Below, piece by piece: positions 58,988 to 60,691 of a stretch of DNA of 64,000 bases. Within the stretch, counting starts at the first letter, position 1. Every line of letters begins with the position of its first letter. The stretch is from Podarcis erhardii. Taxonomy: Eukaryota. Location: assembly GCA_964252035.1 (NCBI GenBank), contig OZ176202.1; one strand, written 5' to 3'. The notes below the pieces were generated by a model. That model worked only from the letters and a program-made list of their open reading frames with translations, had not been told where the DNA came from and did no database searches. Position numbers and translations under genes: made by a program.

Positions 58988-60691
58988 ATGACTGTCTGTT
59001 AAGGACGCTTTAAACATGCACAAAGCAAAAAATTGTATCATGTAACATAGACCAAATTACTCCAGATACTTTAAAAAGCAAGAGTTATTTTGATATGCCA
59101 CTTAAGCTGAGAGCTGCTTCATACTTTATATTGCCACTCAAATACAGCAGAACTCCAGCAGTGTGTTTGGTTGTATATACATATATGTATGGAAGGAGGA
59201 CACACAACCACAAGCACGCTGGGAAACTAGGATTGGCCACAACTCCCCGTCCAGGGTACAATGCATATTTCAAAACAGTGTTGACTCCAGAGAATGGCAA
59301 GCTCAGGCATCTGTCAGGGCCCACTGCCCTAGTCATGTTGTCATCCCCGCTTTGTTTTGCAAGCCCCATCTTTCTCAAGGGAACCCAGTAAGTGTCAAGG
59401 CCCACAAAATTCTGCAAGATGTGCATCTTTCTTTCACACTTTGTATGTGTGTCACAGCAAGTACCAGTCAGTATACCTGGATTGCCACAAAAAGTATGAG
59501 GCAGCTCAATGACATGCAGAAACAAGGTAATAATAAATGCCTTTAAAGTATAGGTGCCCTTATTCAGAAACTCATGTGTACACTGAAATGCACATGAAAT
59601 TCCCACACACAGTGGTTTCCCCTCCATTTCAATGTCATGTCTGTGGGCACACAGAGTTGTTTCTCTACAGAACTGAATGGCAAAGGAATGAATGGTAGGA
59701 AGGGACTCGCTGTGTATTTTGGAGTCCCTACATCTTTAATGCATAACTAAACTAAAGCAAGAATATTTAAGGTGTGCACCTTATTTGAAGGCCCTTAAAC
59801 GTGACACATTAATAGGAAATATTACCTAGATGTGGAAAATAGTATTATCTAGATGTATACTCCTAACCATATCTACTGAGGAAGTCCTACTGAAGTCAAT
59901 GTGGCTTACTCTCAGGTAAGCAGCCTCAGTTCATTACTTCTGTTCTGATTTACTGCAGACATTGTTCATATCTATAAACAGCTGACTTGTTTTTCCTCCT
60001 CCTTTACTCCCAATATTTAAAACAAATAGCTGTAAATGCCACAAAAATATGTCACCAGATCATCTAAATTACTGATATGTTTCAGTATTCCAATGAAATC
60101 TATTCTGTTAGGAAAATGACTCATGGAAAAGCGAACAAATATTTGCATACAGTTCTCTTGTACCAATTTAAGGAAGCAATATTTTAAACTAAAACAGTTA
60201 TAAACAAACAAATTCTTGACTGCAACGTAAGAGCTTGAGCGATAAGATACAAAAGGAAACTTTGGCAGTTACCTCCACGTCACTTGATCTTGACCTTTAC
60301 TCTTTAGGGCTTGCTAGATGGACTTGACAAGGGCCGGAGAACCAACCAAATCAGACTTGGCTTTGACTTTGGAACTTGAGCAAATGTCGGAAAGCCGAAG
60401 CCTTAACTTGGTGTTGTGGCTTTGTCTTTTCCTTGAAAAAGGACTTCCCCTCTTCCAGTTTTCTTTTTATCTTTTTCCACCCTCCCTCTTTATTCCTTGA
60501 AGCTTGAACTTTAAGGTGTCTTTTGGCTTGCCTGCTTGGACTCTATCTAACCAGGTTCATTCAAACTTTGGGGTGCTTGCCAGCCACTGTGGACTGCTTT
60601 ACATTTTCTGAGACAAAGAAATAAATACATTAAGTTAGGACGCAATAACAACAATGCACCTCAATAAAAAATACAGTGACATAAAGGATAT
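58988..60691 (-). other. SRSF12: U12-type (minor spliceosome) intron of SRSF12
   Basis: 5' end ATATCCTTT (60691-60683); branch TCCTTAAC (59005-58998); the frame-restoring 3' end is AT at 58989-58988. Confidence 0.88.

Follow-up and report, generated by a model that had tools for sequence, protein, structure and literature searches.

A described system close to the intron considered here is that of the paralogous gene SRSF10, whose autoregulated minor intron, with AT-AC ends, harbours exon 3 as a nested exon (Meinke et al. 2020, PMC7244321; reviewed in PMC8329584). This exon 3 is provided with a rarely used minor 5′ splice site and with a dominant poly(A) site (Meinke et al., PMC7244321), and the human SRSF10 intron is catalogued as AT_AC (PMC8280824). 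Concerning SRSF12 itself, de Wolf et al. 2021 (PMC8280824) catalogued the human intron (NM_080743.4) as U12 AT_AT in their Datasets EV1-EV3, and Olthof et al. 2019 (PMC6717393) also list it among the minor introns. SRSF12 is absent from a review of nested U12/U2 introns. As to the termini, AT-AT is the second commonest non-canonical combination among the minor introns of animals (PMC10639083), and the 3′-most base of AT-type U12 introns has been described as tolerant of substitution, AT-AT being one of the known variants (PMC1635337). The distance between the branch site and the 3′ splice site ranges from 10 to 20 nt, with an optimum of 11-13 nt (review, PMC8199999).

The intron under study is located on the minus strand of a stretch of 64,000 nt of Podarcis erhardii DNA (contig OZ176202.1), which was analyzed as a whole, contains no N, and is referred to below as the window. 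The intron occupies positions 58988..60691, is 1704 nt long and displays AT-AT termini. It is the ortholog of the catalogued human intron, and as such it was already known and is not new. The look-up of SRSF12 in a catalogue of U12 introns, proposed as a check in the original prediction, returned the human intron precisely as U12 AT_AT (PMC8280824). The lizard and human introns interrupt the same site inside the Gln codon of RNP1, and they coincide in the donor ATATCCTTT, in the 9-mer of the branch site (GTCCTTAAC, identical to the human SRSF12 branch entry), in the 11-nt spacing and in the ...agtcat end. They differ in length (1704 nt in P. erhardii versus 1623 nt in human), in the base with which the following exon, here called exon B, begins (G in P. 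erhardii, giving the codon CAG, and A in human, giving CAA), and in two bases between the branch site and the intron end (agacag versus agctag, respectively). The SRSF12 minor intron carries the flag ‘HumanOnly’ in Olthof et al. (PMC6717393), yet squamate-like contigs, bat, sheep and frog have it as well, which shows its wide conservation. The flag probably reflects that annotation was missing in the species compared by those authors.

The exons flanking the intron, and those coding for the rest of the protein, were read and translated from the minus strand. Exon A, the second coding exon of SRSF12 (60692..60796), was recognized by its translation, by a Pfam match to RRM_1 (E=5e-7) and by its matches to 72 proteins of the SRSF10/12 type. 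Running from 60796 to 60692, it encodes 34 residues plus CA, and its 3′ end reads ...TATATACA at 60692. In terms of protein, exon A terminates in ...RGFAYI followed by CA, the first two bases of a Gln codon. Exon B (58884..58987) starts at G58987 with G TTT GAA GAT GTT, and is composed of this G, 34 residues and an A (its last base, 58884), after which gtaagt follows. Its sequence is of the SRSF12 type, as in the SRSF12 of bat, sheep and Xenopus. The RS-rich tail is encoded by exon 4 (58548..58689), with the start of the RS region, and by the last coding exon (57428..57782), with the RS domain and the stop codon TAA at 57430-57428. The introns bordering these two exons are ordinary GT-AG introns. 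Tail-to-tail with SRSF12 there is an ORF with a PNRC motif (46764-47204, plus strand; Pfam PF15365, E 1.4e-6), and the same arrangement was found in a homologous locus, L002. Judging from the SRSF12-type exon B, the RS exons and the synteny with PNRC, the gene can be identified as SRSF12, as opposed to SRSF10.

Exon 1 of SRSF12 was sought between positions 60800 and 64000 and was not found there; it probably lies beyond the end of the window. A CpG-rich stretch (63200-63900, GC 0.49-0.58) is located upstream of exon A, with no recognisable SRSF12 first exon within it. In another part of the window, a complete ORF of 169 amino acids (43797-44306, minus strand) contains a BORCS6 domain (PF10157, E 6e-32).

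The 5′ end of the intron is formed by the U12-type 5′ splice site ATATCCTTT (60683..60691, minus strand), which begins at the first intron base, A60691, and is a perfect match to /RTATCCTTT. Close to the other end, the U12 branch-site motif TCCTTAAC (58998..59005, minus strand) fits TCCTTRAY and places the branch A at 58999. The 3′-terminal AT (58988..58989, minus strand; A58989 and T58988) was read directly 11 nt past the branch A. The spacer between both, c-agacagtc-at, is purine-rich and has no polypyrimidine tract. In the interval of 10 to 16 nt past the branch A, the sole A-N dinucleotide is the AT at 58989-58988. The layout originally described, with a perfect U12 donor and an AT end 11 nt past the branch A, was thus recovered in full by direct reading. 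Taken together, the donor, the branch motif, the 11-nt distance, the penultimate A and the U12-type orthologues are those of an AT-AN intron.

The number of copies of each motif is another matter. In the 64 kb of the window, ATATCCTTT occurs once, with 0.96 copies expected by chance, and TCCTTAAC occurs twice, with 2.8 copies expected. The above-chance signal resides in the placement of the motifs exactly at both exon edges and in their conservation across species, not in motif counts.

The junction compatible with the protein was studied by a brute-force test, in which every pair of donor and acceptor cuts near both intron edges was scored for the rebuilding of RGFAYIQFEDVR. It was rebuilt in only three registers, namely 60692|58987 (AT..AT) and its two slid versions, TA..TG (1 nt) and AT..GT (2 nt). 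According to the original prediction, the AT-AT junction was the only one able to rebuild RGFAYIQFEDV. This was confirmed in the sense that, over all the cut pairs, no GT-AG or AT-AC pair rebuilds it; apart from AT..AT, just the two slid registers do so. The protein cannot tell AT..AT from the slides of 1-2 nt, as CAG and CAA both encode Gln. At the mRNA level, the joint predicted for the AT..AT register is ...ATACAGTTTGAA (CAG), i.e., ...ATACA-GTTTGAAG, while the joints predicted otherwise are ...ATACAA-TTTGAAG for the slid register and ...ATACA-AGTCATG for an AT-AC intron.

It is extremely unlikely that the productive register is a slid one, either TA..TG at 60691|58986 or AT..GT at 60690|58985, with CAA as the Gln codon. 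It is true that each of them rebuilds RGFAYIQFEDVR and that in mammals, where exon B begins with A, the resulting mRNA is identical and the registers are indistinguishable. However, the U12 donor consensus starts exactly at A60691 (/ATATCCTTT), and among the three registers only AT..AT has ATATCC at the intron start. The register would be fixed by the pairing of U11 and U6atac with the donor. In addition, TA..TG and AT..GT with such a motif offset are not known as termini of minor introns.

Another acceptor to be considered is the AC at 58995-58994, since AT donors are canonically joined to AC and the reading frame would be kept, with Val-Met put into RNP1. This insertion had been anticipated in the original prediction, together with the short distance of this AC to the branch A, and both points were confirmed by reading the sequence. 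The distance is just 5 nt, to be compared with a minimum of 10 nt (PMC8199999), the bat and sheep orthologues lack any AC in the segment from the branch motif to the exon, and the two added residues would interrupt a motif that does not vary in any of the homologs. So, an AT-AC intron at this locus has hardly any likelihood at all. Two other types of junction were rejected as well. AT-AG splicing to the AG at 58993-58992 gives an immediate stop (CAT CAT GTT TGA), as it had been anticipated too. The in-frame GT-AG pairs that use this same AG, with donors 60681|60680 or 60675|60674, depend on poor donors and would disrupt RNP1 by inserting residues into it.

Concerning other species, the 72 short proteins of the SRSF10/12 type mentioned above were matched when exon A alone was searched (60664-60855, region 18-57). 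Most of them were genomic ORFs running on across the donor to give ...RGFAY[IV]Q-YP[LF], and this shows that the boundary CA|ATATCCTT is conserved from invertebrate-like sequences to mammals. The donor ATATCCTTT was present in 16/16 homologous loci compared. The 3′ end was read in several of these loci (L001 to L015), all of which contain ATATCC and the branch core CCTTAAC 10-12 nt from the intron end. An AT end, with the branch A 11 nt away, was read in a squamate-like Logan contig (L001, about 88% identical in the intron), in the bat Pipistrellus nathusii (L007), and in sheep and argali (L008/L009). In SRSF12 of Xenopus laevis (L015), the end is AG at 12 nt, and in L002/L003, which are syntenic with a PNRC gene and hence SRSF12 orthologs, it is AC at 11 nt. 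With regard to the SRSF10/12 homologs, L004-L006 have AG at 10 nt and L010-L014 have AA at 12 nt. Across the SRSF10/12 family, the last intron base can be C, G, A or T, with the donor, the branch site and the spacing (10-12 nt) being fixed.

The three amniote cases are alike in detail, as L001, L007 and L008/L009 contain gtccttaac and ag(ac/ct)agtcat|, followed by the FEDV exon, and the whole 26-nt 3′ block of the intron is conserved. The terminal T at 58988 is common to all the amniote SRSF12 sampled (L001, L007, L008 and L009). A sequencing error at this position, contemplated in the original prediction as a way of losing the AT end, is thereby ruled out, because the same T occurs in all of them. 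The question of whether other vertebrates share the boundary, which had been left without an answer, received a divided one: the AT end is common to the sampled amniotes but does not extend beyond them, the ends being AT-AG in Xenopus and AT-AC in the syntenic ortholog L002/L003.

All this makes it very probable that we are dealing with an ancient U12-type intron of SRSF12, belonging to the AT-AN (‘A-type’) subclass, with AT-AT ends, and splitting RNP1 within a Gln codon. The main claim originally made, a U12-type SRSF12 intron with AT-AT ends, is thus well backed by its sequence features, by the orthologues of bat, sheep and L001, and by the human U12 AT_AT entry. Concerning its mechanism, U11 would pair with ATATCCTTT and U12 would pair with TCCTTAAC, while the position of the 3′ cut would depend on how far it lies from the branch A (11 nt in this case), falling on the sole A-N dinucleotide available in the permitted zone. 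As this sole dinucleotide is AT, the intron would get AT-AT ends, with the terminal T acting presumably as a tolerated variant of the usual C. From the anatomy of the intron, its conservation and the human catalogue, we infer that P. erhardii would use the junction 60692|58987 and would depend on the minor spliceosome for it.

Public gene models fail at this intron, the AT-AN boundary being mishandled by annotation pipelines. The sheep model P0019 inserts YPLCYCVHLVI by means of a GT-AG pair located within the U12 intron, the Tetraodon model P0033 inserts YI, and the lamprey model P0054 reads AYMPPFEDV. A Logan protein of 95 amino acids (P0040), which may be from human or another primate, contains the contiguous sequence ...AYVQFEDV....

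Inside the intron, there is a conserved cassette of 335 nt (60273..60607, minus strand), delimited by a strong U2-type 3′ splice site (CCTAAC, a pyrimidine run and CAG|) and by the 5′ site GAG|GTAAC. Over approximately the first 450 nt of the intron (60691-60235), and likewise over the cassette, the identity to bat, sheep and Xenopus is 75-78%. The core of the cassette is GA-rich and contains, at 60429-60421, the sole copy of AAAGACAAA in the window. This motif is conserved in 4/4 amniote sequences aligned and is the same as the consensus given for SRSF10 in a table of PMC9022966. Moreover, the cassette aligns colinearly with the exon region found inside the intron of L016, a locus of the SRSF10 type (blastn pieces with E 6e-6 and 1e-3); after that region, L016 has a minor-type donor, GTATCC. 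Between the U12 donor and the cassette, direct reading of the minus strand (60654..60663) gave an in-frame TGA (60663-60661) and then a candidate major-type donor, GAG|GTGCAT (cut 60660|60659). This candidate is only 52 nt before the cassette acceptor, and its mammalian position is not confidently alignable.

Two hexamers of the cassette deserve mention. An AATAAA is located at 60488-60493 (minus strand) in the GA-rich core, where the two mammals have AGTAAA, and a conserved AGTAAA is located at 60297-60302 (minus strand) near the 3′ end of the cassette, where L016 has AATAAA. Both could serve as alternative poly(A) signals, in the manner of that of SRSF10 exon 3. Apart from that, 14 small sequencing runs (71-143 million letters) from two related organisms contained 60-68% of the words sampled from a 3.6-kb stretch that is mostly intronic, a result that would fit the capture of conserved elements rather than RNA.

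The occurrence of a conserved U2-type cassette within the intron could be taken to mean that the major spliceosome, acting through this internal cassette or through weak GT donors, handles most of the transcripts, with the AT-AT junction being minor or unused in P. erhardii. In the same direction, human datasets contain a core-exon (CE/AA) event and cryptic 5′ and 3′ sites within the SRSF12 intron (including PMC8280824 and PMC6717393). Nevertheless, no major-type route gives the conserved RRM. Furthermore, purifying selection is evident on exons A and B as well as on the RS exons, none of which is disrupted, and for this reason a productive path must exist. A predominance of major splicing is, accordingly with these data, very unlikely, and the minor AT-AT junction is preferred as the productive one.

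The comparison with SRSF10 is of interest in relation to the possible role of the cassette. Both paralogous introns interrupt the same codon, have the same donor, include a conserved internal exon within the U12 intron and contain a stop codon just past the minor donor, and both also carry GA-rich motifs of the AAAGACAAA type. On the other hand, the SRSF10 intron ends in AC and the SRSF12 intron in AT, and the SRSF12 cassette terminates in the U2-type GAG|GTAAC where L016 has the minor-type GTATCC. It is conceivable, although on the doubtful side, that SRSF12 keeps a minor/major switch of the SRSF10 type. The cassette, shared by squamate-like contigs, mammals and Xenopus and homologous to the autoregulatory exon 3 of SRSF10, would then serve as an autoregulatory or poison exon recognized by SRSF10/12 through AAAGACAAA and the GA-rich sites, and the terminal T of amniotes would keep the productive acceptor away from the major spliceosome.

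A different kind of regulation had been put forward in the original prediction, namely, that the intron is intrinsically inefficient on account of its terminal T and that the AT-AT ends are a rate-limiting valve for the output of SRSF12. In an experiment with the P120 reporter, reportedly by Dietrich et al. in 2001, a terminal U was the least active of the 3′ bases. As a class, the A-type minor introns are weaker than the G-type ones. Besides, the human SRSF12 intron shows a PSI of 0.19 in controls and 0.63 in ZRSR2-mutant MDS samples, but this change is non-significant (padj 0.115) and the HeLa values of the same intron rest on 0 spanning reads. The human minor introns with AT-AT ends in ERCC5, UBR3, KCMF1 and HNRNPLL are more informative. 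Like the SRSF12 intron, they belong to the AT-AN class and have an ATATCC donor, a branch site of the CTTRAC type and a short spacer; unlike SRSF12, these genes, which are unrelated to it, are well expressed. Their retention in controls (PSI 0.07-0.10; PMC8280824) is no worse than that of AT-AC introns in the same tables. This shows that an intron with AT-AT ends can be removed efficiently. As the baseline retention of other human AT-AT minor introns is only 7-10%, the idea of a valve is not supported as it was stated, and it must be considered unlikely. The persistence of the T in amniotes does not need to be read as a selection for weakness, since it is the 26-nt 3′ block as a whole that is conserved. 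Any regulation is more likely to come from the conserved 335-nt cassette than from the AT-AT ends.

The practical value of these observations concerns annotation, as this intron breaks automated gene models (those of sheep, Tetraodon and lamprey), and aligners that discard non-canonical junctions will miss the productive junction of SRSF12. The intron is also a clean example of the freedom of the last base in a minor intron of the AT type, with AC, AG, AA and AT ends in homologs of one and the same ancient intron. The nested conserved cassette is a more interesting lead than the AT-AT ends themselves: if the switch outlined above were true, the coding mRNA of SRSF12 would be obtainable only through minor splicing.
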